The position numbers and the translations under genes are program-made. From positions 372,001 through 436,000 of the forward strand of contig CDRNVI010000026.1 in assembly GCA_977017575.1 (NCBI GenBank): 64,000 nucleotides of DNA. Direction: 5' to 3'. Each line of letters begins with the position of its first letter. The first letter of the stretch is position 1. The DNA is from Paramoeba atlantica (taxonomy: Eukaryota > Protista > Discosea). The notes under the pieces are model-generated. The model did no database searches and was not told the origin of the DNA. It saw only the letters and a program-made list of their open reading frames with translations. Of this stretch, positions 1,077 through 46,890 are shown one piece after another.

Positions 1077-3071
1077 ATGTATGTGCGAAAAAAGCACACG
1101 AAACAGAAACGGATGCTACTGCGATCCTTATACAACTTTTCTTCTCTCACACCTTTTTTACAAAGGCACCGCAAAGTAGTTGTACAACTTCCCGAAGACC
1201 TTCTGCCCTATGCCCTCCTAATTCAAGAACTAATTAAAGAAGAGTGGAACCATAGTCCTCAGAACGAAACTCTCTGTGCTAAAGCTGAGTCGTTAGGAGC
1301 ATGTGGCATGACATGTGCTTGCACTCCTAACATGGACGAACAGGGTGTCGCACTAAATACACTGGACGAACTAGCTTGTCCAAAGCCGAATGTTACCTGT
1401 ATCACCGAGAAGAAATCTTCCTGTGATCAAGGAAAATACGGAGCGCCGTCTATTGCGATTATGGCAGACACAACATTTACCTCATGTTGTCCCGATGAGG
1501 TATCCGCTGAACACCTTCCCGGGGTTGATGGAATTGTACACTTTGGAATGGATTGCGGGATTAAAACTTCCCGAATACCCATCCAGTATTGCAGACGAAG
1601 CTTCTCGTCTACGTTTCTTGCAAAATGGGAAAGCGTTTTAGAAAACGAGCTGAAGTCTGTATTTCATACTTTAGAGAGCTCTGAACAAACATCTGGGGAT
1701 TTCATTTCGAACGCAAAGGATGGCATAGCATCATTACGTATTTTGAGTATTGTTCTTGCTGCGGAGGCATATGAGCTCCTACCTATTATACGAACCGTAG
1801 CCAACCAACTTGCGGATGAGGCCAAACAACTCGGATGGGAATTCATTGTCGGTTCTACCACTACAAATGAAACGACCCCAGAGGGTTTCGATACAATACG
1901 CCTGGGCGCACTTCAGATCCCTCTGAAGGCCTCGGTCTATTTCCTTGTCGATCCTACGCTATCCGATGGTTCCCACGTGGGTGCTCTCCACGGGGCTTCC
2001 GAGCGTGCAACGATCTCCAATCCCGAATCCCACCCGCTCTTTTTTCTTACCGGATTGCTCGCCACACACTACGGCGTCCCTCTCCACATCTCCTCGGTTC
2101 GTTTTCCTTCACACGTAAAGGACGAAGCCCGATCGGAGTCGTTCGTCTCTTCCCCTACGGTGCCCAGCAATGACGGAGTAAAAAGTCTACTCCCTATTGA
2201 TGAATTACACAACACCACCGCGAAAATGAATCGTTCAAAACTATGGGCTTCACACGAAGAGCGTGTTGCTGTAAAATCAGCACGATCCAGCGATGCAGAA
2301 TTGGACCCCTGCCGACGTCGTGCGACCCAATCTGTCTATCTGCGTGCGAAACTGCGGTCCTCGCTTGCGGTAGGGATTGTGGTCCATACCCTCAGTGCGG
2401 TCGGGTCGAATCTTTTAATCCGCTACTTGTATGATGTGTTAAAACGAGCAGGCAAGCGCCCGTACGTGTTGTATACGGGACGTCTTAATGTGCCGAAACT
2501 GGCCAATTTTACCGCCGATTTAGATCTCTGTGTGCTGGTGGGGTGTGCGTACCACGGCGTAATGAGCTGTTCACAATCCAGGGAGTATCCGATACCTGTT
2601 CTCACCCCGATGGAGGTGTGGACGGGATTGTTTGTGGATAACTACCCGGAATTAAACGTTTGTATGGGAAGTGAGGTAGATCCTGCGTTCCTGTCCCGCA
2701 CAAACGATGTTTCGCCCCTTTTTGAATCCTCCCCTGTGCCCACACTTCCACTGATTCCCCATGCGCTGCGTTGGTTTCGACACGCCTATGAAAAGCTGGG
2801 CATGTCAAAGCCAGAGGAAGACACATCGAATGTGGTAACAGGAGGAAACTGTTCGTCACAAAATACCCTTTCGCGAGGGATTAAGTCTTCCGCACTAACA
2901 GTGGCCCCTGCACTCTCACTTTCGACAATAACACGTTGGCACTCGCGCAGCTACAAGGGGTTAGACCCACAAGTGGGGCAGACGCCTGTACAGACAGAGA
3001 TTTCAGAGGGCATGAGTGGGATACCCAGCGTTTACGACCATGAGAAGAGCGAGGAAACAGCATTGCAGTAA
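1077..3071 (+). CDS. DPH2: Diphthamide biosynthesis protein 2
   Basis: VVVQLPEDLL, IMADTTFTSCCPDEVSAEH, GIVVHTLS, GRLNVPKLANF, and the DPH2-type C-terminus RSYKGLDPQVGQT...EGMSGIPSVY. Confidence 0.85.
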   Translation: MYVRKKHTKQKRMLLRSLYNFSSLTPFLQRHRKVVVQLPEDLLPYALLIQELIKEEWNHSPQNETLCAKAESLGACGMTCACTPNMDEQGVALNTLDELACPKPNVTCITEKKSSCDQGKYGAPSIAIMADTTFTSCCPDEVSAEHLPGVDGIVHFGMDCGIKTSRIPIQYCRRSFSSTFLAKWESVLENELKSVFHTLESSEQTSGDFISNAKDGIASLRILSIVLAAEAYELLPIIRTVANQLADEAKQLGWEFIVGSTTTNETTPEGFDTIRLGALQIPLKASVYFLVDPTLSDGSHVGALHGASERATISNPESHPLFFLTGLLATHYGVPLHISSVRFPSHVKDEARSESFVSSPTVPSNDGVKSLLPIDELHNTTAKMNRSKLWASHEERVAVKSARSSDAELDPCRRRATQSVYLRAKLRSSLAVGIVVHTLSAVGSNLLIRYLYDVLKRAGKRPYVLYTGRLNVPKLANFTADLDLCVLVGCAYHGVMSCSQSREYPIPVLTPMEVWTGLFVDNYPELNVCMGSEVDPAFLSRTNDVSPLFESSPVPTLPLIPHALRWFRHAYEKLGMSKPEEDTSNVVTGGNCSSQNTLSRGIKSSALTVAPALSLSTITRWHSRSYKGLDPQVGQTPVQTEISEGMSGIPSVYDHEKSEETALQ

Positions 3072-3347
3072 GCTGAAAGAAGACGTACGTACTGTACGCA
3101 CTGTATGTAAGATGCCAAAAGATTATTGTTATAAGAAAATAACACGAAAGCCGAAATACTTATATTTGATATTTGGGCCGCAGTTTTGTACACTTTTGCG
3201 AAATTTATAGCGCCATCTTTAGTATTTCATCGCTCTCCTGCTTCATTTGCCTCTCTAAGCGTAGTCACCTTTCGTCCACTCTCGACCATTCACCTCTCCT
3301 TATCATTTCCAAATCTACCCTCAACGAACCCCACCAAAAAAAAGAAC

Positions 3348-4817
3348 ATGTCGCCCCCCACCCCTACCCTCTTAACTGAAATCCAACACGGACACGATGC
3401 CGGGATTAGCTATGTGAAGTTCGTCTCTCTGCGCCCCAACGCACCTCTTTCCTATGACGCTCTACTCGTCACCTCTCTTGATGGCACGGTGTCAATATGG
3501 GAACGCGGTCCCGCTGCTTCAGCCTCTGGGCGGTCTTCCCATAAAAACATGCCTTCTTTTTCCTGTCTCACACGATGGGGAGCGCCCTCGGAGGGTTTAG
3601 GCCCTTCTCATGAGGAACAGGAGCGCAGTATGATTAACTGTGCGTGTTGGTTAACCCCGACAGTATGGTCTCCAGGTTCCCTCCTGCTGGGATGGGAGAC
3701 CGGGGCGATTTCTCAAATCGTTTTTACCGGAACGACCCTTTCAGAAATCTCAAAAAAGATTTTGTGGCATTCCCCTGAAGATGGAGGGGTGAATGCGATC
3801 ACAAAGGTATTGGATCTCAACGCGTGGTTCAATCCTAATCCTCGAGATGAAAATCCGGATCCTCGAATCAGGGATTGGTGTTGTTTCGGTACCGAGAACG
3901 GGCGGGTGGGGATTTTAGATCCCCGCAGACCGCACGCGTTGCTCGCCTCGATTCAACTTGCATCGGACATTACCTCACTTTGTGTGATGCCGCTTAACGA
4001 GAAGATGAGAGAAAAACAGGAAGACCAAAGGTTTGAATTTTCACAAACGGGTCTCTTGTTTGTGGGAGAGGGCTCGGGGACGTTGTCTTGTTGGGCTTCA
4101 CCCCTTCTGAGTGGGAATGATCTTAAAAAAGAAAGAGGGGAGCCGAGGGAGGTGGTTGGCTCCGATGGAATTGAGCTGAAACAAGTGAAGCTACACACGG
4201 ACGAGACGGAGTACGGTATTGGGATCAATGGAATGGTAGGTTTGCCTGTTGAAGCGTGGGATGAAAAATTAAGCTGTGTAGAAACAAAGGAACGCCATAC
4301 ACAGGGTGGATTTAGGAGTCCTCTAGCAGGCAGTGTGGCTCGACTGCTGCTGTATTATGGTACTTCATGTGAAATTCGGGAGCTTCGTAAGATGGATCCT
4401 CTAAAAATTGGACTGGAGTGTGATGATGCTTCAATGGCAGATTTTGGCCTTGAATTACGTTCCACCGATGCTCGGCTATGTAGTGCACATGATGCATCGA
4501 GAGTACATAGCGACTACGTACGTTCCTGTGTCCGTGTAAACGATTCTAAAGGGTGTTGCTTGCTAACTTCTGGCGATGATGGGCGAATCTCTGCATGGTC
4601 GTACTCTACGAAATCTATGAGATCTTTTTACAAAGATGTCTGTAACGAAACTTGGCCATTGTTTGAATTAGCGGCTGATCAGGATCCCATAATGACTATC
4701 GATGCCATAGTCAACACACCCACGCATGAACGTCGGGAAGGAAATAACTCTGAAGCAATTGTTTTTGTCAGTGGTTCAGAGGGTCCCTTTCTACGAGTGT
4801 GGGAGTGGCCTTCATAG
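3348..4817 (+). CDS. WD40-repeat protein
   Basis: LLVTSLDGTVSIWE, CFGTENGRVGILDPR, LLTSGDDGRISAWS, FVSGSEGPFLRVWE. ATG 3348 chosen because it follows a pyrimidine tract; the frame is open from 3186. Confidence 0.75.
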   Translation: MSPPTPTLLTEIQHGHDAGISYVKFVSLRPNAPLSYDALLVTSLDGTVSIWERGPAASASGRSSHKNMPSFSCLTRWGAPSEGLGPSHEEQERSMINCACWLTPTVWSPGSLLLGWETGAISQIVFTGTTLSEISKKILWHSPEDGGVNAITKVLDLNAWFNPNPRDENPDPRIRDWCCFGTENGRVGILDPRRPHALLASIQLASDITSLCVMPLNEKMREKQEDQRFEFSQTGLLFVGEGSGTLSCWASPLLSGNDLKKERGEPREVVGSDGIELKQVKLHTDETEYGIGINGMVGLPVEAWDEKLSCVETKERHTQGGFRSPLAGSVARLLLYYGTSCEIRELRKMDPLKIGLECDDASMADFGLELRSTDARLCSAHDASRVHSDYVRSCVRVNDSKGCCLLTSGDDGRISAWSYSTKSMRSFYKDVCNETWPLFELAADQDPIMTIDAIVNTPTHERREGNNSEAIVFVSGSEGPFLRVWEWPS

Positions 4818-5023
4818 GTAAAACAACAAAACGACGACTAGGATAGTACTCTGCTGAAAATTTTCCTCAGTGCATTCTTTAAACACACCTTTAATTAAAA
4901 CTCCCTTTCTTTTACCAAAACGGTGTTTTTTTAAAAACCTTTTTTATATCATCTACAACCATCTTATTTTTTTGGTCTTTTGAAGTATCTTGCCACAAAC
5001 TTTATTTCCCCGAAACTTTTTCA

Positions 5024-5392
5024 ATGCTGTGGTCGGTAGTGCAATCAGTCTTCGGTTGGTACGATGTGGCGAATGGGAACCCAAAAGAGATTCCTGTAAA
5101 TTACGTCTTCTCCAACGGATATCACAGTTCTCAGCCCATAGCTGTTTCGAATACTGTCCCGACACAACTTCGTACCTTTCCACGAACTCCCAGTCTTGCG
5201 CGTTCTTCGTCGCTCTTTACACTTGAACGACAACCTTCTACGGGACTCTTGCATTCACCCCTCCCTCTGGCACCCGGGGAGAGTTACCTGACCCCCCACC
5301 GTTACTTGTGGTTTTGTTATGGATCATACGTGCTGCTTTCGCTTTTTGCAATGCTTTTCATTGCATTTGTGCGGAACTTGTTTTTTGGATAA
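5024..5392 (+). CDS. Small hypothetical protein with C-terminal hydrophobic segment
   Basis: 122-aa ORF on the coding strand ending in YLWFCYGSYVLLSLFAMLFIAFVRNLFF. Confidence 0.35.
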   Translation: MLWSVVQSVFGWYDVANGNPKEIPVNYVFSNGYHSSQPIAVSNTVPTQLRTFPRTPSLARSSSLFTLERQPSTGLLHSPLPLAPGESYLTPHRYLWFCYGSYVLLSLFAMLFIAFVRNLFFG

Positions 5393-5587
5393 GGGACGCC
5401 TTGGGTTATCATTCAGAAACCTTTGTTACTTAAATCCTTCGGTGGCTTCACAGGGATTTTATTGGAGCGAAGGAGAAGCGCATTTTTCGTAATAAAGATG
5501 TATATGATACGACTATATATATTGTACGTATACGGGCTATAAAACCTTTTCTCATTTCCGTTTTTCGATATCCAAAACTCATTCTTC

Positions 5588-5901
5588 CTCCGGATGGTCA
5601 CTGGCAAACCAAACGCTTCACAGACAGATTTGGAAGTTTCGAGACGGACGTCCTCTACCAGTTTCCGCTTGTCCAAGTCGGCACAACGCGTTGTTTCCAA
5701 CCTCTGGGTCGACCAATCTTACGTCATCACGGCTTACCCAAGAGGTGTAAGCCGTGCAAGGGAGCTGGTTCCCTAAGGGGGGTCGGTCTTCCGAGTACTG
5801 GCCAAGACGGATCTCGACCCAGCCTCTTAGAGTGAGGCCACCAGGTATTATGCGGGAGGCGAGAGTCGAGGTTGCCGTCTGCTTCAAGTTCTTGCCCACT
5901 T
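5588..5901 (-). repeat. Dispersed SINE-like repeat, copy A
   Basis: The reverse complement aligns over about 310 nt with 45795-46135. Shared blocks include ggcctcactctaa, cagtactcgga, gggaaccagctccctt, ctcttgggtaagccgtg, caagcggaaactggtagaggacgtc and acttccaaatctgtctgtgaag...tgccagtgaccatccggag. Confidence 0.8.
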
Positions 5902-5904
5902 ACT

Positions 5905-6020
5905 TGAGGGGCCGCGGGTGGGGGTCAAAACGAGATCATGATACACGAAAAAGACCGAATAATAACCACTCACGCGCGAAATACTTTTTTATGTAGTCGT
6001 GAAATCACGCGAGATCATAC
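5905..6020. repeat. Truncated MITE-like element related to 19045-19120
   Basis: Starts tgaggggccgcgggt (compare tgaggggctgcgggt) and ends aatcacgcgagatcatac, matching the reverse complement of the gatctc repeats inside the 19045 element. Confidence 0.5.
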
Positions 6021-6171
6021 TTAATCAAGAGCTGACGTGAATGAAAGTACTATGAAAGTAATATGTAGACGCGTCCTTGATCTCACAAAATTGTTTCAGA
6101 ATATTACATTGTAACTGCTTCAATTGTATCTAGCAGACTTTGACTGGTTTCGCTTCCTCTTTGTCCATTCG

Positions 6172-7014
6172 ATGCACTTAATCCCCACTCCAGATATTCC
6201 ACGTGTGGTACGCGCGGGTAAGGTACGTGGAAATCTTGCTCAGGAATATCAACTGGAACGATGTGTACATAATCTTACACAGCGGCACCAGTCCTGGACT
6301 TCAGAGACCCCTGCTTGTATGTGGTACGGTGTGAGTTGTCGCCACGGGGATGTTTATGTTATTGAATGGAATCATGAAAAACTACGAGGCATACTTGACT
6401 TCTCGGCCTTACCTGTCTCCGCTGTGGGTTTCCAGTGTAAAGAAAATCATCTTACGGGTCCCCTTTCCCTCGTTGAATTTCCTCCTTCTCTTTTAGAACT
6501 TAACGTTGCCGTTAATCAGCTCTCAGGTGGTTTAGACATGGGAGAACTTTGGTCAAAGATTACATTCTTTGAGGCGCAGGTAAATACAATGTCGGGACTG
6601 TTGGATTTTACACAAATACCTCCCGATTTGTGGGAAATGCGTCTTGCATGGAATGGATTCTATGGTAATTTAGATTTCACAACTTATCGGATACCGCGAA
6701 ATCTGAGAGTTTTGGATCTTTCACAGAATAAATTTCGTGGCACGCTTTGCTTGAAAGGCTTATGGGCGCCCGATCTTCAATTATCAGTGCAGGGCAATTC
6801 CTTGATTAAACATTTTGATGTCAGACAAGTGAATATCGCTCTGCTTACCGTAGACAGAAAAATGAAGTTGCTTGATGTCCCCCGCTTCTCACCAGTAGTT
6901 ATAAAGTACGTCCCCCGCAGTAAATCACGACCGACTTCAAGATCTATATCTACTGATCCTCATGGCCTGTCAAAACGAACGTGCATGTCAGTTGCATGTC
7001 TACTCTATGTATGA
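6172..7014 (+). CDS. Leucine-rich repeat protein (family A)
   Basis: RAGKVRGNLAQEYQL cap, W.SETPACMWYGVSC, LRR units LNVAVNQLSGGLD and LDLSQNKFRG. Paralogue of 8543-9280. Confidence 0.8.
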   Translation: MHLIPTPDIPRVVRAGKVRGNLAQEYQLERCVHNLTQRHQSWTSETPACMWYGVSCRHGDVYVIEWNHEKLRGILDFSALPVSAVGFQCKENHLTGPLSLVEFPPSLLELNVAVNQLSGGLDMGELWSKITFFEAQVNTMSGLLDFTQIPPDLWEMRLAWNGFYGNLDFTTYRIPRNLRVLDLSQNKFRGTLCLKGLWAPDLQLSVQGNSLIKHFDVRQVNIALLTVDRKMKLLDVPRFSPVVIKYVPRSKSRPTSRSISTDPHGLSKRTCMSVACLLYV

Positions 7015-7511
7015 GGTAACCCATCACAAACACCCATCACGAACCCCACACTCATGATCGGCCGTTTCAGGTCCACTGGGCGGTTGGTTCAGTGTGGTGT
7101 CTCCAACTTCGAAAATAGGTTCCCCAGTAACCAGCCGTCCTTCCCCGCACATGCTAAATTTTTACCCAAACACACAGCAGCAATGTAGAGTTCCATAAAG
7201 TTAGCTATTAGTATACAAGCGGTCCGAAGCATTTTTCATTTAATTAAGTATATTATAGTACAGTGTAAGCTTAGTATGTATTGAAATGAAGTAATTGTAT
7301 ACATTGCGTAGTTCGGTACATTGTATACCCCATCTAGGGGGATGTACCCCCTAGTTATGTTAGCAGTTAGATAATTGTTGTAAATGCATGTGCCTGATTG
7401 CAAATTTAATTCTAATTTCCTTGCATGTGATTACGTAAATGGATTCTTCAAAATCCATTTTAACTATTTGAGTTTTTAGGTGCACCCGTCGACCCTTATC
7501 CAATACAATAA

Positions 7512-8165
7512 ATGTGTTACATTTTCTTCAATACAGCAGACTCATCAGTTCGATCAGGAAAGGTGCGAAGAGCTCTTTTACCTCAGGAGTTCACTCTCGC
7601 GCAGCTCGTACAGGATATCACCACCTCCGAAGCGTCCTGGACTACTTCCACTCCTGCATGTGAATGGTCGTACGTGAAGTGTAATGCTGAAAAGGAAGTA
7701 ACTAGTTTGCCATGGTGCTTCAGTTTGTTTGCATCAGATTGTCCCACACTACAAGGAAAACTATCTTGGAAATACTTACCACGTACCTTGTTGTTTCTTG
7801 ATGCTTCTTCGCAGTCTTTGAGAGGGCCCGTGGATCTTTCTGTTCTACCTCCGGAACTACAAGATTTCCACATTAGTATGAATGAGTGTAGCGGATCACT
7901 GGATTTAACGCGCTTGCCCCCTACTCTTAAATCCCTATATCTCGATGATAATAGATTCAAAGGTGAAATTGATCTCACGTGTCTTCCGTTGTCGATACGC
8001 GAAATCTCCTTGTGCTACAATGAGCTATGCGGTGAGCCGGACGTCACGAAGCTTCCGGAACATGTATTCGAAGTTGACCTTTCTCACAACCACTTTACAT
8101 GGCATGGAGACGTACCATCAATAGTTATTATTTGGGATGAAGAGGAGACAAAAGCAATCGATTAG
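7512..8165 (+). CDS. Leucine-rich repeat protein (family B)
   Basis: SWTTSTPACEWSYVKC; LTRLPPTLKSLYLDDNRFKGEIDLTCLP. Confidence 0.8.
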   Translation: MCYIFFNTADSSVRSGKVRRALLPQEFTLAQLVQDITTSEASWTTSTPACEWSYVKCNAEKEVTSLPWCFSLFASDCPTLQGKLSWKYLPRTLLFLDASSQSLRGPVDLSVLPPELQDFHISMNECSGSLDLTRLPPTLKSLYLDDNRFKGEIDLTCLPLSIREISLCYNELCGEPDVTKLPEHVFEVDLSHNHFTWHGDVPSIVIIWDEEETKAID

Positions 8166-8542: not shown

Positions 8543-9280
8543 ATGTATCTGACGTCTGCAGCTGATATTCCACGTGCAGTACGCGCGGGTAAGGTACGTG
8601 GAAATTTGGGTCAGGAATATCAACTTGAACGATTTGTACATAATCTGACACAGCGACATCCATCATGGACCTCAGAGACTCCCGCGTGTAAGTGGTACGG
8701 AGTCAGTTGTCGAGACCAAGAAGTATTTTCGATTGATTGGGAAAAAGAAAAATTACGTGGTAGTTTTGAGTTTTCGGGTTTGCCTCCGAGTACAGCACGA
8801 TTTTTGTGTTCTAAAAATCGTGTCTTTGGTTTTTTGCCACTTCTTGAATTTCCTTCCTCTCTCTTGCGAGTTGTCGTTGCGGCGAACCAGTTTTCGGGCC
8901 CCTTAAATTTGAATGACTTGTGGTCCACAGTTATTTATTTTGAGGCACACGTAAATGTGCTTTCTGGAGCTCTAGACTTTTCTACGCTCCCACTTGATTT
9001 GCGGGAATTGCGTTTAGCTAAGAATAACTTTGACGGCGAGCTCCACCTGGTGACAGGACGCGTGTTACAAAATTTGCAAGTTCTTGACCTCTCTTATAAC
9101 TCATTCAATGGTGCGCTTCGTTTAAATGGACTGTGGGCGCCTGCTTTGCAACTTTCACTACAAGGGAATCATTTTATTGCTGCACAGGAACTTCGTAATG
9201 TTTCACTTTCCCGTTTGAAGGTAAGTAATTCGCTAAGAAATCTCGTACGATACTCTTCCATGCCCGTAGAATACGAATAG
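8543..9280 (+). CDS. Leucine-rich repeat protein (family A paralogue)
   Basis: N-terminal DNA nearly identical to 6190-6350 (gatattccacgtg.gtacgcgcgggtaaggtacgtggaaat). LRR units. Frame is open from 8429. Confidence 0.8.
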   Translation: MYLTSAADIPRAVRAGKVRGNLGQEYQLERFVHNLTQRHPSWTSETPACKWYGVSCRDQEVFSIDWEKEKLRGSFEFSGLPPSTARFLCSKNRVFGFLPLLEFPSSLLRVVVAANQFSGPLNLNDLWSTVIYFEAHVNVLSGALDFSTLPLDLRELRLAKNNFDGELHLVTGRVLQNLQVLDLSYNSFNGALRLNGLWAPALQLSLQGNHFIAAQELRNVSLSRLKVSNSLRNLVRYSSMPVEYE

Positions 9281-9846: not shown

Positions 9847-9963
9847 TGAGGGAGTTGCTATGCCCTGTCCATGGTATCGTGTTCAGGGGAACAGCAATCC
9901 CCCATTATCTCGGCGTAGTAAACACGCCTTGGCTTGCCTGGCACCACGATTGCCGAAAAAAAA
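9847..9963. repeat. Left terminus; inverted repeat of 11357-11473
   Basis: 117-bp inverted match with 4 mismatches by my count (tgagggagttgctatgccctgtcc... versus ...ggacagggcatagcaactccctca). Confidence 0.95.
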
Positions 9964-10313
9964 AATTCGGTTCATTTCGCAGCCCAGTTGCTTCCCACTT
10001 AAGGGGCCCGCTCCCACAACCGAGTGATCTCCCCGGCAGCACGGTTTTACCCATGCGTCGAGAAGGCTGGGGTGTGAGACCAGGGTGCATTAGTAGAAAA
10101 TTTTCGGAAGAAGAAATACGGAGATTTTACTGCATAATGGCGTAGAAAACTTTGAGTGCAATAGAACAAAGGGTTGGCGTAAACCTTTGGTTAACGTTTT
10201 TTCTTTTGGGGGGATTTACTTTCTTTGCCATTCCTCATGCTATCAACTCATAAATTTTACCAATTACTCTAGATTCGTATATTTGTTTCCTCCAGTTACG
10301 CTTTCCATAATTC

Positions 10314-11088
10314 TTACATAGGGTCTACATGTACATCGCCAGCTCTTAGAGCTGAGTTCAGGAGTGCTTCTTTTCTGTCATATTTATGCTCTTCTCGAGT
10401 CAACCCGTCCGCTGGGTTTTCTTTAGATTTAATATGGAAAATTCGAAAAGAATGTCCATGTTTCCCTATCTGTTCATCCATTTCCGTGATCTCATTACAC
10501 ATCGATCTCGTAACTGATGTACGCCCCGATTCTGATGGTATTTCACTCTGGTGAAACCAGTGTCACATATCAGCGGATAAAAAGTTTACGTTGGGGAAAT
10601 TCTCTATTACATGGATAATTTCAGCGATAGCTGGAAAATTCAAGCAAGGAGGGCGATTGCACATCTCATTTGGTGGTGTTCCATCCGCAATACTTCTTGA
10701 CAATTCCTCCGCTTTTGGTACCTCAAAGTAACGTAAATATAAACGTGATGATGATGATCGAGAGTCGTGTGCCACACGTAGCACCCCGCATTCCACGAGT
10801 TCTAATAAATGTTGTAACCAAACCCCGGAGGATAGTTTCCTTATTTTCCCGTGAAAAGGGGGACAATTTATCTATTCAATAAAATTTTGGGTACTTTTCA
10901 ATGCCGTGCAACATTTGATACCCCATGGTAAACCATGTTTTAGGTGTGTTGATGTAAAGAAACCAAGTTGTTCCTTCAGTATTTATGATGAATCTTCGTT
11001 AACAAAGAATTCGGGTATAAATGCATCAAGCAAAGCAACCGTTGCTTTTTTTTCTAGTTCTCTTTTTTTTACTCCACCGAATAAGCAC
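10314..11088 (-). pseudogene. Internally deleted reverse transcriptase/RNase H of TATE/DIRS type
   Basis: One frame with three internal stops: ...LRYFEVPKAEELSRSIADGTPPNEMCNRPPCLNFP...NFLSADM*HWFHQSEIP. This is the RT N-terminal motif (D.RHWFHQ; the TGA is probably from CGA). It is joined directly to ...IFHIKSKENPADGLTR, the RNase H C-terminal motif N.AD.LSR. The YxDD region is missing. Confidence 0.75.
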
Positions 11089-11356
11089 TAACGCGTTCAC
11101 TATCGTCGGTCTGAATTTCTGATTCAATATTCCTACCAGGCGAGATATCCTGAAAAGCCGTATTCCGAGCGTCAACCCGAGACGTCCGGTGTGTGCCTCG
11201 ATACTTCCATATGGGAGGATCTATAACGCACGAACAATACTCCCCCCCCCCCTTTGTTTTCTCTCCCCCGAACACTCCATATTTTTCAACTTCAAATCTT
11301 CTTAGGGGGGAGGACTCCCGTTAACATGCCTCAAGTGAGGATTAAGGAACTATTTC

Positions 11357-11516
11357 TTTTTTTTCGGCAATCGTAGTGCCAGGCAAGCCAAGGCGTGTTT
11401 ACTACGCCGAGATAATGGGGAGTTGCTGTTCCCCTGAACATGATACCATGGACAGGGCATAGCAACTCCCTCATTATCACTCCTTCGTAAGCACCATGTT
11501 ACCGGGACCAAGCCCT
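11357..11516. repeat. Internal complementary region (ICR) matching the circular junction of the element
   Basis: Its reverse complement reads ...cttacgaaggagtgataa-TG-agggagttgc..., which is the right end (...gaaggagtgataatg, 12576) fused to the left end (tgagggagttgc, 9847) through a shared TG. Confidence 0.85.
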
Positions 11517-11607
11517 AGGTGCCAGGCATGCCATAGCACGTCACAACTTCCCACCCTCTCCCTTCTGTTTTTATTCTGTTTTCACTTCATTAAAAAAACA
11601 TGCTGGA

Positions 11608-12336
11608 GAGGAGGATGTATAGCGCAAATGGAACGGCAAGTGTGCCCCGAAGGACACGGAGCCCATGGGCCTCCCAGCACGAATGCTGGGGCGGTGGTAC
11701 CCCGAAGGGTACGGAGCCCATGGGCCTCGTTACAGAGGATGTATAAATGCAACGGCAAGTGTGCCCCGAAGGACACGGAGCCCATGGGCCTCCCAGCACG
11801 AATGCTGGGGCGGCGGTACCCCGAAGGGTACGGAGCCCATGGGCCTCGTCACAGAGGATGTATAAATGCAACGGCAAGTGTGCCCCGAAGGACACGGAGC
11901 CCATGGGCCTCCCAGCACGAATGCTGGGGCGGTGGTACCCCGAAGGGTACGGAGCCCATGGGCCTCGTTACAGAGGATGTATAAATGCAACGGCAAGTGT
12001 GCCCCGAAGGACACGGAGCCCATGGGCCTCCCAGCACGAATGCTGGGGCGGTGGTACCCCGAAGGGTACGGAGCCCATGGGCCTCGTCACAGAGGATGTA
12101 TAAATGCAACGGCAAGTGTGCCCCGAAGGACACGGAGCCCATGGGCCTCCCAGCACGAATGCTGGGGCGGTGGTACCCCGAAGGGTACGGAGCCCATGGG
12201 CCTCGTTACAGAGGATGTATAAATGCAATGGCAAGTGTGCCCCGAAGGACACGGAGCCCATGGGCCTCCCTGCACGAATGCTGGGGCGGTGGTACCCCGA
12301 AGGGTACGGAGCCCATGGGCCTCGTTACAGAGGATG
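11608..12336 (-). repeat. Tandem array of about 6 x 119 bp, with three TTCG-loop hairpins per unit on the minus strand
   Basis: Unit starts (acagaggatg) at 11732, 11851, 11970, 12089, 12208 and 12327. Minus-strand stems: gtaccc-TTCG-gggtac, cccagca-TTCG-tgctggg, gtgtcc-TTCG-gggcac. Each unit also has two gcccatgggc palindromes. Confidence 0.95.
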
Positions 12337-12496
12337 AAGTACTGCCAGGCCGGGACCAAGCGAATTGATGTGTGACATTTTCAGGCGTGTAAGATTGTTT
12401 AGTTAAATGGAGCTAAATGTAGTAGTTATACTGGACACTAGAAACAAGTAATTCAATTATATTTAGTTTATAATCGTGCTATAGATGTATTGAAAT

Positions 12497-12565
12497 CTTC
12501 ACCCTCACACTCCGCCGAATATGGCGGTGCCGGGCTTGGGACCGGTAACAAGCGTGTTTACGAAG
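12497..12565 (-). ncRNA. Twister self-cleaving ribozyme (type P1 with a P5 stem)
   Basis: Minus strand: CUUCG UAA ACAC GC UUGUUA CCGG UCCCAAGC CCGG CA CCGCC AUAUUC GGCGG A GUGU GAG GG UGAAG. P1 CUUCG/UGAAG, L1 UAA and GAG-GG, P2 ACAC/GUGU, P4 CCGG/CCGG with loop UCCCAAGC, pseudoknots CC:GG and GC:GC, P5 CCGCC/GGCGG. Confidence 0.88.
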
Positions 12566-12706
12566 GAGTGATAATGTATATTTCATAAAAAGTGTATGAT
12601 TTTGTTTTTACCGATCAAAATTAGCGTTCTAAACGGAATTACATATGTAGATGGCAAGAAGTATGACATACCAGAAAGATAGCACGCGACACCTTTAGTT
12701 CTTTTC

Positions 12707-14761
12707 ATGTACCGCGCGTTTTCCATTACTCACAAGTCCTGGTCTTCCTCCTGCGGGACGACTTCCTCACATGCGTCCAGTCGATACCACCTCACGGGTA
12801 TGGCACAGCCCTTAGCCAAAATTCTACACGCCAAAGCTACCCTTCATCGTGAAAGGATTCAAAAACTACGAAAGGAGAAGGGCAATGAGAGTCTGGGACC
12901 CATCACAGTTGACTCGTTGTATAATGGCGCACGTGGGCTCACGTGTCTTCCCCATGAGCCTTCGACGTTGGACCCTCTGGAGGGCATTCGCTACCGTGGT
13001 ATGAGCCTTGCGGCGTGCCGAAACAAACTGCTAGATTGCTCCGAGATTGGCACCGAGCCGCGGCCGGAGGCGTTGTTCTGGCTCCTGCTCACAGGAGAAC
13101 TCCCCCATGCGGATGAGCTGCGTGAGCTCTCTGCGGATCTCCACAGGCGAAGCACCGAAAGTACCACACTACCCTCGGTGCTGTCCTTTCTCGAGACCCT
13201 CCCTCGCTCCATGCCCCCGATCACACAACTCACCATCGCACTGCTCGCGCTCCAACCCCACTCCTTACTCGCGCTCGCCCAAACGGAGGGCAAAGCCACC
13301 AAACGAAACACCCCCGATTTCATGCTCGAGGACGCCCTTAACTGTGTGGCCTGGGTCCCCGTCCTGGCCGCCGCGATCTACCGCAGGCACTGTGCTCCTG
13401 TGGATTCCAACGACACCCTCCCCCCTTCCGAACCAACCCACAACATCTCCTCAACAGAATCTCCCCTCTTCGAGACCACACCCTATTCTATTTCAAACCG
13501 TGAAACTCATGAGGGGGAAACCCATGAGGGTAACAACAATAACCATACGAACAACGCTCATCCTCTAAACCCCTTCCCCCCCTTATCCCACCCACGACCT
13601 CAAAATCCTCAAGACCACAACTCTCTTCACCTTCACGACAACACCTTGGAGAGCTCACAAAACACACGACCCACGAGTCGTGCTCCAAATTCAAAGTCGG
13701 CTCTCTCCTCCGATCCCTCTTTGGGGTCTTCTTGTGAGTCTTCTGGTGAGTCTTCTGGTGAGTCTTGTGAGTCTTCCGAGGCTCTGGGCTCGGACTGGAC
13801 CGCGGCCTTTGCCCGTGGACTCTCTCTCCACGGTTCTGGGGCCCACGACCTGCTCCGGCTCTTCCTCTTCGTCCACGCCTGCCACGACGGGGGGAGTCTC
13901 TCCACCCATGTGGCCTCGATGGTCGGGGGGGCGCGGGGGGATGTGTTTCTGTGTCTCTCCAGCGCCTGTGCCGCCCTGGGCGCCCCCGGGCACGGGGGGA
14001 ACATGGCGCAGGGGCTGGAGTTTTTACACGCCCTGCAGTGTACGTTGCGGAGGAAGAATAGAGGGGTTGGAGGGGGAGGTTTAGAGGTTGGGGGATTTGC
14101 CCCGCATTCGGCTACGAAGGGGGTAAATGCCTCCATCTCTTCTTCCTCCTCTTCTTCCCCTCTTTCTTTTTGTTCCTCTTCTTCCTCTTCTTCTTCTGTT
14201 TCCGGGGACGAGGGTCTCCGTTCGATTCTCTCCGAACTCACGTGGGAGTATTACCACAACGGAGCGGACCACATCCCCGGCTACGGTCATGCGGTGCTTC
14301 GAGGCCCCGATCCGCGATACGATCTGCTCTATCGCTTCGCCTCGCAGCACTGTGGGGGTAACCCCTACTTTCGCATTCTCCAGCAGATCCACCCGATCAT
14401 GCCGGAGGTGTTAGCGCGGCATGGGCGCGGGGGTAATCCGCATGCAACATCGGATGCCATCTCGGGGCTGTTGTTGGCCCATTACGGGATGAGGGGAAGG
14501 CAGTCGTTGTCTTCTTCATCTTTTTCTTCATCTTCTTCTTTTATTCACTTCTTTCCCGTGCTGTTGGCCGTAAGCCGACAGCTCGGGATTGTGAGTGGGT
14601 TGGTTTGGGACCGCATGGGTCGACGCCCGGTGGAACGGCCGCGGTCGGTGTCGGTGGGGGAGCTGGGGCGGCGGTTTCAAATCACAGAGAGGGGGGAGGG
14701 GAAAATGGGGCAGAGGGGGAAAATGGGGGAGAAAGGGGAGAGGAGGGAGAAAGAGGGGTAG
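12707..14761 (+). CDS. CS: Divergent citrate synthase with long low-complexity insertions
   Basis: YNGARGL...EPSTLDPLEGIRYRG, PEALFWLLLTGELP, HDGGSLSTH, GHGG, IPGYGHAVLR.PDPRY, VWDRMGRRPVERPRS. Confidence 0.85.
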   Translation: MYRAFSITHKSWSSSCGTTSSHASSRYHLTGMAQPLAKILHAKATLHRERIQKLRKEKGNESLGPITVDSLYNGARGLTCLPHEPSTLDPLEGIRYRGMSLAACRNKLLDCSEIGTEPRPEALFWLLLTGELPHADELRELSADLHRRSTESTTLPSVLSFLETLPRSMPPITQLTIALLALQPHSLLALAQTEGKATKRNTPDFMLEDALNCVAWVPVLAAAIYRRHCAPVDSNDTLPPSEPTHNISSTESPLFETTPYSISNRETHEGETHEGNNNNHTNNAHPLNPFPPLSHPRPQNPQDHNSLHLHDNTLESSQNTRPTSRAPNSKSALSSDPSLGSSCESSGESSGESCESSEALGSDWTAAFARGLSLHGSGAHDLLRLFLFVHACHDGGSLSTHVASMVGGARGDVFLCLSSACAALGAPGHGGNMAQGLEFLHALQCTLRRKNRGVGGGGLEVGGFAPHSATKGVNASISSSSSSSPLSFCSSSSSSSSVSGDEGLRSILSELTWEYYHNGADHIPGYGHAVLRGPDPRYDLLYRFASQHCGGNPYFRILQQIHPIMPEVLARHGRGGNPHATSDAISGLLLAHYGMRGRQSLSSSSFSSSSSFIHFFPVLLAVSRQLGIVSGLVWDRMGRRPVERPRSVSVGELGRRFQITERGEGKMGQRGKMGEKGERREKEG

Positions 14762-16842: not shown

Positions 16843-17494
16843 ATGTCCTGCCTGAATTTTCATACCGCTGACTCGTCCTCTCGATCAGCAAAGGTGCGAG
16901 GTGCTGTTTTACCGCAAGAATTCACGCTGTCACAATTGGTGAGTATTCTTTCCTACAACTCCTAAGCGTCCTGGACGAATGACACTCCTGCATGTGAATA
17001 GTCGTACGTCCAGTGTAACACTGAACAGAAAGTAGTTCGACTATTTGTGAGATTCTCGGGCCTATGGTTTTGATTGTCCCACACTAGAAGAGGAAGATTA
17101 TCCCACACTAGAAGGCGAATTGTTGTGGAAATACTTGTCGCCTACGTTGTTATACTTTGGTGCTTCGTCGCAGTCCTTGAGCGGGCTTGTGGATCTCTCA
17201 ATTTTACCTCCCGATCTTAAAAAAATCAATATCAGTATGAATCAGTGTAGTGGATCATTGGATTTGACGTGCTTGCCCTCTACTCTTCAAGCTATGTACC
17301 TCGATAAAAACAGATTCAAAGGTGAAATTGATCTGACATGTCTTCCACCATCGATCCGCGAAATCTACTTGGGCGAAACTGAGCTATGTGGGGAACCGGA
17401 TGTCACGAAGCTGCCCGAAGGGTTACAGGTACTGGACCTCTCTTTCAACAAGTTTGGTTGGCGTGGGGATATACCTGCTCTAGTAAGAATCTAG
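16843..17494 (+). pseudogene. LRR family B pseudogene (paralogue of 7512-8165)
   Basis: MSCLNFHTADSSSRSAKVRGAVLPQEFTLSQLV...S*ASWTNDTPACE*SYVQC has two premature stops. A duplicated tcccacactagaag lies near 17075-17115. The 3' part is open and LRR-like. Confidence 0.85.
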
Positions 17495-18580
17495 ATTAAG
17501 ATGCGTCAACAACTGTTTGCCATGCATGATTAATGCACTTTACTTTTTGTGATTTTCTTTTCGAAGAAATAAATTGATTAGGTTTTCCTAAGAACATCGT
17601 TTACCATATACGTTATGCGCCACACTCCTACATGGAGAACCCCCAGAGAGTCACTTGTAGCAGGAAAAAAGTACGCCCAGCACTATGACCTGATGATGGT
17701 TAGGATCAGGCTTGGGAGAAATCTCTAGTGACACAGATCACTACGAATAAATGAATGGCGTAGATTAAATTTGGTTTGTAACTCGACGCAGATGAACTTC
17801 CAACTTAAACGGTTTAAATACTTCTATTCATGCATTCTTTTGGTCATTGTTATTCCTTAACCACGTGACGGGCTGCAGCTGTTTCGCCCAAGATCGGGAT
17901 CGCGGTTTCTATTTTATAGTCCCCATCTTTCGGAGCTACCTTAGTTTAACTAAGTTACTGTCCCGCTGCTCAATCTTTTTACTCTTTGCATTAATGGTTC
18001 TCCGAGGTTGGAGCCGATTGCACTGGACAAAATTCCGCTGAGGAGGAATATATCGTGACCCAAAGCGCTTGTCGTTGTTTTGATGTGCCGAATAGGTCGA
18101 ATTATGTCCACCAAACATTCGGAAATTTCCCGAGCCTCTTCCTCTTTGGGCGTTGTGCTTTCTCGCTTTCGCCATTTCGACTGAATGGCCGCACTCGGAA
18201 CACTCACTTGGGTGGCTGTTGGGACGAGACACACGCTTTCTCGGCATGCTTCCAGGCACGGCGCTTTGGAGGCAGCTAAATAATTTGCATTATATGCAAG
18301 AAATTGGGCAGCCAGCTCCAGTAAGAAATGGTTAGCAGGCACCTGAGCGGCAAGGGAACGATGATGGGGACGATGAAGCTAACGAGCTCCGACTCCTGCT
18401 TTCCAATTTCGTCAGTACAACACTACGCATGACCATTCTCCTAAAACTAGAATAGAAAAACAAATAAAAGTTTCGCTTGTAACTTTTTTAAAATTTTCAA
18501 GTTATTTTGCGAAAAGGTGACAGATAAATAGGGGCGATGGTGGATAAAAAAAAATTATTAGAAGCGCTGAAAAGCGACAT

Positions 18581-40879: not shown

Positions 40880-40991
40880 TACTCTTAATAGTTCATGAAG
40901 ATGTTTCCTTACGAGTAAAGGAAGAACTTACAATTTCTTTCAAATTTCGCGAATATAGAAAATCTTATACTACAGATATAAATTTGGCATA

Positions 40992-41815
40992 CAGTCAGCA
41001 AAAAAAAAACTTTCGAATGTTTTGATTTTTTTTTCTTTTGTATACAGCCATTGATTAAATATCACTGTTGCGCTGGTAATGTGTGCTAAGTAGTGTAGGC
41101 ATGAGTGTCACCCAACAGCACCCATAGATAGTTCACCTCAGTTCGTTCTACCCAAGAATTAAGAATGAATTTAAAAAAATGTAGCCTTCGAAAGGTTTTT
41201 TTGCCTAACATAAACCAAACCTAACATAAATCACGTACCCGCAAGACCCCTAGCAAGATACAGTTTCTGTACCTTGTGCCCTTCCTTTCTTTTCCCGGAA
41301 AACTTCCGACCACACAACTGGAGACCAGTTGTGCGCTGTCCAGTGCTCATGGGCCGTGGCAAAGTCCATCCGAAGCTTGCGATGGCGCTTGGACAGGTAG
41401 AGCTTTCGGACACGCTTTCTACCTTTGTGTCCGAAACGGTGCATCGAAACTCGGATAGACTGAGGAACAACTTCGGCAACGCTCTCGCGGCGCAGCTGAG
41501 ATGAAACCTCTCGCGCAGAATTGCCAGAGAACACAAGTCGTCGCACACGGCGTGTGCACGGCTCGGAAAGCTTTCGAGGGAGTCCACCCTGCAGAGAGTA
41601 TCAGGCCTTTCTTGTTTTAGTATCATAGAAATTGTTGAGATGCTTAAGTTAACTGTATCAGAGATGGACCTCATAGACACGCCGCTGTCGTACTATTAGG
41701 TGACACTCATGCCTACACTACTAGCACACATTACCAGCGCACCGGTGATATTTATTCAATGACTATATACAAAAGGAAAAGAATTGAAACATTCGAAAGG
41801 TTTTTTTGCTGACTG
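40992..41815 (-). mobile_element. 824-bp internally deleted Tc1-type DNA transposon
   Basis: TA|CAGTCAGCAAAA...TTTTGCTGACTG|TA; TIRs of about 125 bp. Frameshifted transposase N-terminus: SMRSISDTVNLSISTIS.IL / RRLV..NSAREVSSQL..QSIRVSMHRFGHKGRK...LSKRHRKLRMDFATAHEHWTAHNWSPVVWS. Confidence 0.92.
41255..41301 (+). other. Captured fragment of the SL-like locus inside the Tc1 element
   Basis: aagatacagtttctgtaccttgt|gcccttcctttcttttcccggaaa equals 43846-43907 minus 15 nt (tggtaaattttgcta). Confidence 0.8.
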
Positions 41816-42246
41816 TACATGTGCACCTGCAGGTACACCTGAGAATTATTTTTTACCCGAGAATTATTTTTCTTAAAGTTCCATAATGAATGGGGATTTC
41901 AAAAAATAATAGAAAAGTTTTTATTGGGTTAGAATACGTATGGTGCACTAACTGTAAACAAACTGCGATAAGAATGGCTGTATACTGGTAGAGCTGTATG
42001 ATATAAAGGGCTACATGTACTGAGAAACACAGGTCTTCGAAAGCTAAACCACAGAAAATAAAGTTTATGTTAATGCATTTCGGTTTTCGTTTAATAAGCA
42101 GTTTGCAAGCCAAAGTGGGAACAGAAAAATACTTTCCACATGGCGAATACATGATGTAGAACAGCGAGAATATGTTTTTTTCTTTCCTTTCTTTCTTTCT
42201 TTCTTTTCACTGTAGTTGGTACTTTCTTTCCCCTCATCGATTACCC

Positions 42247-43827: not shown

Positions 43828-43975
43828 AACATAGGCTCCTCCATAAAGATACAGTTTCTGTACCTTGTTGGTAAATTTTGCTAGCCCTTCCTTTCTTTTC
43901 CCGGAAACGGGCATACATTTTCCTTTTAAATGCCCGTTTCCGGCTGACGGCTAGCGGAAACTGTCCCTCTTTGTC
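43828..43975 (+). ncRNA. Spliced-leader RNA gene-like sequence (solitary; functional copy or relic)
   Basis: aagatACAGTTTCTGTACcttgTTG|GTaaattttg carries the kinetoplastid SL core and the TTG/GT donor at 43870/43871. It is followed by nested stems gctagcc/ggctagc and ccggaaacgggcat/atgcccgtttccgg. The 5' end (aacataggctcc...) differs from the usual AACTAACGCT. Confidence 0.55.
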
Positions 43976-44156: not shown

Positions 44157-44299
44157 GTCGGTTGCAGTGCGCCCCTCCGGCTGCGTAAAGAGATGGTGAG
44201 TTGCCTGGACCACCTCTACCGACTGGGACCGAGTCGGTTGCAGTACGCCCCTCCGGCTGCGTAAAGAGAGGGCGAGTTGCCTGGACCCCCTCTACCGAC
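44157..44299 (-). repeat. Two 67-bp structured direct repeats (period 76 bp)
   Basis: 44157-44223 and 44233-44299. Each is closed by gtcggt/accgac and has an inner hairpin with a compensatory T-A/G-C change. Confidence 0.85.
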
Positions 44300-45781: not shown

Positions 45782-46135
45782 GGCGGAGGTGGCGGAGTGG
45801 CAAGAATTCAAAGTTTGAAGCACATGGTGCTCAGACGGCGAGTTCAAACCCGCTCATCGCAATATTCCTGGCGGCCTCACTCTAAAAGGCTGGGCTGATA
45901 ACCGACTAGGCCCAGTACTCGGAGGACCGTCCCGGACCCTCCCCTCAGGGAACCAGCTCCCTTACCCGGCTTAAACCTCTTGGGTAAGCCGTGTTGACGT
46001 ACAATTCGTCGACGCAGCGTGTTGGCAACAGCACGTTGGTGCCGCCTTGGGCAAGCGGAAACTGGTAGAGGACGTCGGCCTCGGAACTTCCAAATCTGTC
46101 TGTGAAGGGTCTGGCTTGCCAGTGACCATCCGGAG
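45782..46135 (+). repeat. Dispersed SINE-like repeat, copy B, with degenerate tRNA-like head
   Basis: Head 45783-45861: gcggaggTGGCGGAGTGG (A-box-like) ... gaGTTCAAACC (B-box-like) ... tcatcgca. The body is homologous to 5588-5860. Confidence 0.7.
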
Positions 46136-46890
46136 CAATCTGGAATGATTTGGATTTTTTAACTTTAGTTCAGGTGGAGTTCAGGAGTATACATGCCTTA
46201 TATGAGGGTAGGCGAAAATGTCGGGGTGTGTGAATCGAAAATACTAAGAATAATAAAGCGTCGTAGAAGCCTAATAGAGGTTGAAATGGATTTTTTTAGG
46301 GTGGAAAATTTTCAGACCCCCCTTATACTTTAGTTTTCCCCAAAACAAGTGAAGTACAAAGGGTCACAGTAATACCACTCTGCCCTCGATTATCGAAAAG
46401 CATAGGTGAGCAAAAACAGTTCAGCAATAAAGAGGAACACAACAATACAGTTCGCGTTATATTGATACATCCCCCCCCCCGGAAATTGGCGTTTCTTGTC
46501 CATTTTTGCTTATTTTTATTGTAAACGAGAGATCTCGTTCGCATAAGACGTTAGCCGTAGCTCCCCCCTGGAACGTAGTTAAGAGTGTCTGACTTACGTG
46601 TGTCTCACACAAGACAAAACATGGTAAAAAAATTAATTCGTCTCTTTCTGGGAGATGTTTGCGAGAAAATTTATGTATGAGGGTGAGATTTTTATTCCTT
46701 TGCGCTCCATGTAGTTATACCACCGCAATTATAAATTTAAATACACTATATCACCTATTAGATTCTCTTCTGGCATGGTACACTTATCTGATGCACACCA
46801 TATGAATACGTGTCTTATGGAAAAGCCTACATTCCTTCACTGCAAAACCGTGACACGATTACATCTTCGCTGCACGTTTTAGGTCAAACT

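Follow-up and report, generated by a model that had tools for sequence, protein, structure and literature searches.

Within a 64,000-nucleotide (nt) stretch of Paramoeba atlantica DNA (GenBank assembly GCA_977017575.1, contig CDRNVI010000026.1, positions 372,001 to 436,000; hereafter the window), a 2.73-kb element occupies positions 9847-12576 of the minus strand. It reads from 12576 to 9847, and element position i lies at window coordinate 12577 - i; coordinates given without a locus name are those of the window. In transcript order the element carries a 17-nt leader, a twister-type ribozyme motif, a tandem array of UUCG-capped hairpins, an internal complementary region (ICR), a spacer, two remnants of a reverse transcriptase (RT)/RNase H gene, and a hairpin-forming 3′ terminal repeat (Table 1). 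A first-pass annotation of this DNA had proposed the leader, the full twister fold, the array, the ICR, the deleted RT/RNase H frame and the 3′ hairpin, and each was recovered in place, between boundaries that do both read TG on the plus strand. We interpret the element as a non-autonomous, internally deleted tyrosine-recombinase (YR) retrotransposon of the DIRS order, in a host with spliced-leader trans-splicing, and would give this explanation as a whole, including both the identity of the element and the twister, ICR and circle mechanism developed below, a probability of about 0.72.

Table 1. Features of the element, its related copies and the spliced-leader-like motif (window coordinates unless a locus is named)
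Feature	Location	Strand	Description
17-nt leader, element 5′ terminus	12560-12576	-	precedes the predicted cut between 12560 and 12559
Twister motif	12497-12565	-	type P1, with P5, without P3; element positions 12-80
Twister P1	12561-12565/12497-12501	-	CUUCG / UGAAG
Twister cleavage site (predicted)	between 12560 and 12559	-	U^A
Twister P2	12554-12557/12507-12510	-	ACAC / GUGU
Twister T2	12552-12553 with 12534-12535	-	GC with GC of the P4 loop
Twister P4	12542-12545/12530-12533	-	CCGG / CCGG, loop UCCCAAGC
Twister P5	12523-12527/12512-12516	-	CCGCC / GGCGG
Twister T1	12538-12540 with 12502-12504	-	CCC / GGG
Tandem array	11626-12336	-	119 nt x 6.0 copies, 98% matches; three UUCG-capped hairpins per unit
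ICR	11344-11515	-	A′, complement of the 5′ end, 11472-11515; B′, complement of the 3′ end, 11344-11473
Spacer	10941-11343	-	site of gag and recombinase gene in full-length relatives
RT N-terminal remnant	10536-10940	-	tblastn with relatives' pol; about residues 52-183 of L004 pol; in-frame stop 10563-10565
Pol C-terminal remnant (RNase H region)	10317-10523	-	residues 499-566 of L004 pol; joined directly to the RT remnant
3′ terminal repeat B	9847-9976	-	complementary to B′; conserved small hairpin and terminal hairpin 9847-9904; ends ...CTCA
L001 copy	L001		1469 bp; same first and last bases as the window copy, different flanks; internal deletion, both outer ends kept
L008 copy	L008		7255 bp; starts CATTATCAC, ends CTCA
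L009 copy	L009		5.3 kb; starts CATTATCAC, ends CTCA
L011 copy	L011		12 kb including nested insertions; starts CATTATCAC, ends CTCA
L003 copy	L003		6958 bp; starts TATTATCAC
AGATACAGTTTCTGTACCTTG(TTG) copies	41253-41275, 43846-43870; L003 12437, 12879, 16238; L004 14002 (-); L008 4643; L011 15657 (-), 18421		spliced-leader-like motif

The window element is a discrete mobile unit with fixed termini. When the 102-residue RT remnant was searched against 1.84 billion proteins it returned 23 matches, the top two at 94% and 90% identity, and all of them, the close as well as the more distant (the latter environmental proteins), lie on contigs of a single European Nucleotide Archive assembly, ERZ24900291, which holds seven related copies of the element. 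The boundaries first drawn in the window recur elsewhere: the 5′ terminus CATTATCAC and the 3′ terminus CTCA are common to the window, L001, L008, L009 and L011, in unrelated flanks, while L003 and L002 match at one end, L003 beginning with TATTATCAC and L002 having the common 3′ end. Within the 64 kb of the window, the terminal 24- to 25-mers occur at the termini and in the ICR only, with none expected by chance. The two halves of the unit, whose independent occurrence the first-pass annotation had named as a way in which it could be wrong, travel together in L003, L008, L009 and L011 in the order twister, array, ICR, open reading frames (ORFs) and 3′ repeat; two loci depart from this, L002 being truncated upstream of the ICR and L004 having a core with no twister module. 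Full-length copies of the sort anticipated there also exist, since L008, L003 and L011 have genes for gag, a putative tyrosine recombinase and RT/RNase H downstream of this head of twister, UUCG array and ICR. DNA likeness between the window element and L008 is limited to twister, ICR, RT remnants and 3′ end. One RT deletion junction is common to the window, L001 and L002, which are collinear across it, and therefore the deleted form has itself been amplified, presumably with proteins supplied in trans by autonomous copies. At L004, positions 1383-6606 hold a gag/YR/RT core between 126-nt inverted repeats (96%), with no twister, array or 5′-end complement, and a LINE-like ORF (zf-RVT) ends just upstream; this core could be either a truncated copy or a simpler relative.

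The coding capacity of the window copy is reduced to two pol remnants, whose positions on the L004 protein mean that about 315 residues (about 1 kb) have been deleted. The window has TGA where L001 and L002 have CGA, and Pfam gave no match on either of the two remnants. Neither gag nor a recombinase gene was found in the window copy by tblastn with the L004 and L008 proteins, and the gag and YR proteins of these two loci gave no match on the spacer at 10941-11343; with full-length relatives that do encode both, the copy is non-autonomous, as had been suggested. In L008, L003 and L004 the genes follow the order gag-like, recombinase of about 295 amino acids, RT/RNase H. Protein P0006 matches RVT_1 at 28.5 bits (cut-off 29.6) and RVT_3 at 22.2 bits (cut-off 21.6), and P0007 matches RVT_1 at 29.6 bits. 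The recombinase proteins carry the motifs ALRSCE, HTLRHGG and KHY, which form the R...HxxR...Y pattern of tyrosine recombinases, and P0025 matches Phage_int_SAM_4 (E = 4.7e-4) followed by Phage_integrase (E = 0.0084), in canonical order and both below the Pfam threshold. We consider the recombinase assignment in the relatives, made from these motifs and profiles, good but not airtight. No methyltransferase domain was matched in the element proteins. The closest homologues of the window RT fragment sit in elements that also encode a putative tyrosine recombinase, which is the affiliation that the first reading of this DNA had predicted. Elsewhere in the window, positions 18175-18351 (minus strand) are 41% identical over 59 residues to the L008 gag-like protein (E = 1.6e-10), and are probably what is left of a further such element.

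At the 5′ end of the element lies a motif that resembles the type P1 twister (Rfam RF03160, clan CL00120) in P1, P2, P4, T1, T2, the U-A cleavage site and all highly conserved nucleotides, and differs from it in lacking P3 and having P5. P1, P2 and P4 stand in canonical order; in the three-copy alignment A3 (window, L001, L003), 23 of 23 pairs form, and all pairs form in L008 and L011 as well. The minimum-energy fold of the window sequence gives back P4, P5 and P2, and the conserved letters are present there: UAA at the cleavage site, GC after P2, the loop UCCCAAGC, and GAGGG before the 3′ strand of P1. The two pseudoknots T1 (CCC/GGG) and T2 (GC/GC; GU in L001) have the potential to pair in all intact copies. 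On L008, which gives the best score, the Rfam twister-P1 model aligns over its full length and all conserved letters match. A model built from the three copies places the motif at the 5′ end of L005, L008, L009, L010 and L011. P5 is represented by at least three unrelated stems, all with 100% pairing, in which 4 of 5 pairs have changed on both sides, and L010 has a fourth stem of 9 bp; since P5 covaries outside the part that is duplicated in the ICR, selection must have acted on RNA structure. Twisters are among the fastest self-cleaving ribozymes (PMC6154101), and from these features of the sequence we infer that the element RNA would cleave itself near its 5′ end. Metagenome contigs scanned with a family-specific twister pattern gave no matches. 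L001 carries a second twister-like P4/P5 motif at 7196-7236 (minus strand), where CCGG-UCCAAAGC-CCGG is followed by a 5-bp stem and preceded by a hairpin; the sequence is otherwise unrelated and may belong to a different ribozyme-bearing repeat.

Two inverted repeats define the ICR: 9847-9976 pairs with 11344-11473 (130 nt, 92%), and 11472-11494 pairs with 12554-12576 (23 nt, 96%), the latter continued by 11497-11515 with 12532-12550. A′ and B′ overlap at the TG of 11472-11473, and since the two repeats meet there, 11344-11515 complements the joined 3′ and 5′ termini, which is how the region had first been annotated. The same arrangement is found in L003, L008, L009 and L011. The ICR lies upstream of pol, again as first described, and in full-length relatives it stands between the array and gag. 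The 17-nt leader and the complement of ICR positions 11472-11488 are 100% identical. Element by element, the 5′ end (A) was set against the complement of the copy in the ICR (A′). Through positions 1 to 19-20, A equals the complement of A′ in the window, L008, L009 and L011, even though leader positions 10-17 vary between subfamilies. From position 20-21 onward, the same fixed differences separate A from the complement of A′ in all three subfamilies (AAACACGC versus AAGCAC-C, and GGTCCC versus GGGACC). The differences set in 2-3 nt beyond the cut predicted after position 17 or 18, so the leader evolves together with the ICR and the sequence downstream of it does not. Such a boundary is what would be expected if the RNA began at the twister cut and the leader were recopied from the ICR in each cycle.

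At the other terminus, no fixed differences separate B from the complement of B′, and in the youngest copies the two are 98-100% identical. Mismatches number 0-1 in L011 and L008, 3 in L003, 5 in the window and 7 in L009; by analogy with a pair of long terminal repeats (LTRs), B and B′ appear to be identical at insertion and to diverge later. The last 58 nt or so form the terminal hairpin proposed in the first-pass annotation (z = -4.1 over the 144-nt stretch that was folded), and it is retained with different sequences in L008 and L009. Between the two ends of the element itself, inverted similarity extends over 25 nt at 80%.

The strongest of the competing explanations accepts the resemblance to a twister and denies the cleavage. 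The sequence would then act at the DNA level, as a recombinase-binding site or as part of an inverted repeat, or else as an RNA structure without catalytic activity that serves packaging or translation. Element positions 1-45 have an inverted duplicate in the ICR, so that their conservation could be partly a DNA-level matter, and every Rfam score is sub-threshold. Positions 46-80, though, have no ICR duplicate and are equally conserved; P5 covaries; all conserved twister nucleotides and both pseudoknots are present; and precisely those loop nucleotides that a twister requires are gone from the ICR copy (GGGACC for GGTCCC) but preserved at the 5′ end in every subfamily. We therefore regard a non-cleaving structure as unlikely.

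Between the twister and the ICR, the array holds 17 UUCG-capped hairpins, and one unit folds with z = -4.0. Analogous arrays, built of different units, occur in L008 (78 nt x 8.6) and in L003 and L009 (124 nt x 4.9). The units of L008 and L009 are not significantly better folded than their shuffles (z = -0.4 and -1.6), so what the arrays have in common is the recurrence of UUCG-capped hairpins and not overall stability. We took the plus-strand ORF at 11496-11984, within the array, to be a side effect of the repetition.

Insertion takes place at one CA without target-site duplication. The L011 copy is flanked on the left by ...ACGATAAAGATA/CA and on the right by CA/GTTTCTGTACCTTGTTGAATT, also given as ...AAAGATA/CA and CA/GTTTCTGTACC..., and the target sequence stands uninterrupted at L003:16227-16262 with a single CA. 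This paralogous filled and empty pair answers the comparison of empty sites that had been suggested at the outset, with the single dinucleotide that was foreseen. The L003 copy is inserted at the same point in another copy of L011's target repeat, and no target-site duplication was found in the flanks of six copies. Across those six sites the flanks loosely follow ATA/CA/(G/T)TT, which is near to the circle junction CTCA/TTAT; at six sites such a resemblance is no more than suggestive. A homologue search with the flanking citrate-synthase ORF, aimed at an orthologous empty site, returned none closer than 27-43% identity. At the 5′ junction of the L003 copy (L003 5465-5486) there are 8-9 extra bases (TGTATCTT) that are palindromic with AAAGATA of the target flank; the first bases of the element are TA and not CA, and the joint is irregular. 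Also at L003, positions 12404-12703, comprising the last 40 nt of the element and its 3′ flank, are repeated with 100% identity 442 bp downstream (12846-13145).

These observations can be assembled into a replication cycle. The element would be transcribed within a longer RNA, and the twister, lying about 1 kb before A′ in the transcript, would fold and cut first. A cut at this place, 17-18 nt into the element, would set the RNA 5′ end without any promoter belonging to the element, and the RNA would start at position 18. During reverse transcription, for which the conserved 3′ hairpin is a candidate primer, the minus-strand cDNA would anneal by its 3′ end, complementary to positions 18-45, to the ICR copy in the same strand; extension over the ICR junction would then restore the lost leader and copy the 3′ repeat B. 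The resulting terminal redundancy would allow a closed double-stranded circle with the junction ...CTCA/TTATCAC..., and the recombinase would cross this junction with a CA in the target. The DIRS-1 ICR is needed for retrotransposition and has been proposed to restore ends that are absent from the transcript (PMC7192593); our scheme is the Cappello model for DIRS-1 with a ribozyme in place of the LTR promoter as determinant of the RNA 5′ end.

Another arrangement of the same parts would have the twister cut unit-length RNA from multimeric transcripts of circular or head-to-tail DNA, with the ICR splinting the ribozyme-made ends for ligation into a circular RNA, as in a retrozyme, so that read-through transcripts of single insertions would not be trimmed. 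Contiguous A′ and B′ would indeed hold the 3′ end of B plus the leader beside position 18, and retrozymes are known to have circular RNAs generated by ribozymes (PMC4918200; PMC7761336). Against this, no head-to-tail copies occur in ten loci, a leader at the 3′ end of the RNA would leave its identity with A′ unforced, and templated regeneration is the simpler account of a homogenisation boundary that falls at the cleavage site; we find the splint improbable, a little more so than the non-cleaving structure. Less probable again is that the ICR serves at the RNA level in addition, holding the 5′-OH made by the twister beside a 2′,3′-cyclic-phosphate end from a second twister on a circular or tandem template, in which case a coding RNA would be circularised and would replicate like a retrozyme before reverse transcription. 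That the 2.73-kb unit is a chance meeting of two unrelated repeats, a twister/array repeat (11472-12576) and an RT-bearing inverted-repeat unit (9847-11473), could be drawn from L002 with its ICR-to-3′ part only and from the inverted-repeat-bounded core of L004 without a twister module, and we reject it as already largely refuted by the comparison of copies, with hardly any probability left to it, because both parts recur in the same order and with the same outer termini in five further loci, the junction TG belongs to both complementarities in every case, and L001 retains both outer ends despite its internal deletion.

Several points weigh against the cleaving, ICR-restored retrotransposon that we prefer. 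All Rfam twister scores are below gathering: L008 reaches 37.4 bits against 67.2 (E = 2.6e-7 for a 106-nt search), the window match is partial (Twister-P5, 17.9-19.6 bits against 37.6), and Rfam at gathering score on the window and L001-L004 found no ribozyme. The low scores follow from the missing P3 and the inserted P5; among known twisters, P3 is present in 78% and P5 in 1% (PMC6154101). The motif is broken in L005, L009 and L010, L003 has A and not U before the cleavage site, and L004 has a gag/YR/RT core and no twister module. The recombinase call is based on sub-threshold Pfam matches and motifs; a recombinase profile gave no matches among PDB sequences, and the AlphaFold model, from a 6-sequence alignment, is poor (predicted local distance difference test score, pLDDT, 44). 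Finally, all large ORFs of the window are on the plus strand and the window copy is antisense to these neighbours, so this copy would not itself be released from the transcript of the one-strand gene array. At L008, host genes and element are on the same strand.

The genomic setting has a bearing on where such a long RNA would come from. The window has two occurrences of a motif, GATACAGTTTCTGTAC, and L003, L004, L008 and L011 together have at least six (Table 1); the motif corresponds in sequence to the 3′ half of the spliced-leader exons of euglenozoans (PMC3795323). Its copies differ in their 5′ cut-off points and in the sequences that follow, apart from those of the window and L008, which continue into a common CCTTTCTTT(T)CCCGG segment; the motif copies resemble retrocopied trans-spliced RNAs, or else the 5′ end of another repeat family. 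Two copies of the YR element (L003 and L011) are inserted at the CA within this motif. Together with the arrangement of ORFs on one strand, the motif suggests a host of euglenozoan type with polycistronic transcription.

Among known elements, the DIRS-1 and DIRS1-like group of Dictyostelium and others resembles the window family in several respects: both have gag, RT/RNase H and a tyrosine recombinase (a putative one in the window family), an ICR in which complements of both termini stand side by side, insertion without target-site duplication, a short sequence that circle junction and target have in common, and a 3′ hairpin put forward as the primer (PMC7192593; PMC6681497). The differences lie in the architecture. 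The ICR of DIRS-1 is next to the right end, whereas that of the window family is upstream of gag, between it and the array; the gene order here is gag-YR-RT/RNase H, whereas DIRS1-like elements have overlapping ORFs in the order RT/RNase H, (methyltransferase), YR; and unlike them the window family has no long inverted LTRs, beyond the 25-nt terminal similarity, and no detected methyltransferase domain. Its 5′ end would be set by a ribozyme and not by an LTR promoter, and a tandem hairpin array occupies the 5′ region. The kinetoplastid YR retroelements VIPER and TATE, with the derivative SIRE, share the order gag, YR, RT/RNase H seen in L004, L008 and L003 (PMC12278014), and also the absence of target-site duplication, the short non-autonomous derivatives and, if our view of the host is right, a euglenozoan-type host (PMC12278014; PMC6681497). 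Compared by description, they have split direct repeats (A1 ... B1 A2 B2) where the window family has inverted complements, and no ribozyme is reported for them.

A ribozyme at the head of a retroelement is familiar from long interspersed nuclear elements (LINEs). L1Tc/ingi and R2 carry hepatitis delta virus (HDV)-like ribozymes and Perere-3 of Schistosoma mansoni carries twister variants, and such a 5′ ribozyme frees the RNA from a longer transcript (PMC8501958; PMC5814959). These LINEs integrate by target-primed reverse transcription, whereas the window family would be of the recombinase type; they cut at or before the first nucleotide, whereas the predicted cut here is 17-18 nt inside and the lost nucleotides would be templated by the ICR. 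Perere-3 has a T-variant twister, in contrast to the canonical core of the window family. No such element came up in a full-text literature search, covering part of the journals, for twister or self-cleaving ribozymes in combination with DIRS, tyrosine recombinase or spliced leader, which agrees with the earlier remark that no described DIRS or TATE element with a twister was known.

Self-cleaving ribozymes have so far been tied to LINEs (HDV-like and twister variants), to Penelope-like elements and to retrozymes (hammerhead). If our explanation is true, the link would extend to tyrosine-recombinase retrotransposons, the canonical twister would gain a concrete biological job, and we could explain how a recombinase retroelement makes a defined genomic RNA in a host with long gene-array transcription and no individual promoters. 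The boundary of leader/ICR identity would be the predicted RNA start, and it lends support at the level of sequence to the long-standing and largely untested idea that the ICR regenerates ends absent from the RNA.

Some further repeats and genes were seen along the way. Paralogous ORFs with leucine-rich repeats (LRRNT_2/LRR) lie on either side of the element, 7531-8116 matching 16862-17475 and 6193-6414 matching 8564-8785, and similar LRR genes occur in L005 (ERZ24900291). L001 has two adjacent 5S rRNA genes at 3930-4186 (98.7 and 53.1 bits, the second degenerate), and among the window and L001-L004 it was the only one with a 5S rRNA match at gathering score. A 300-nt, 83% inverted pair joins 5570-5854 with 45858-46155, 40 kb apart; a shorter one (132 nt, 87%) joins 40990-41121 with 41690-41817 around about 570 bp; and a 76-nt tandem repeat occupies 44157-44299.

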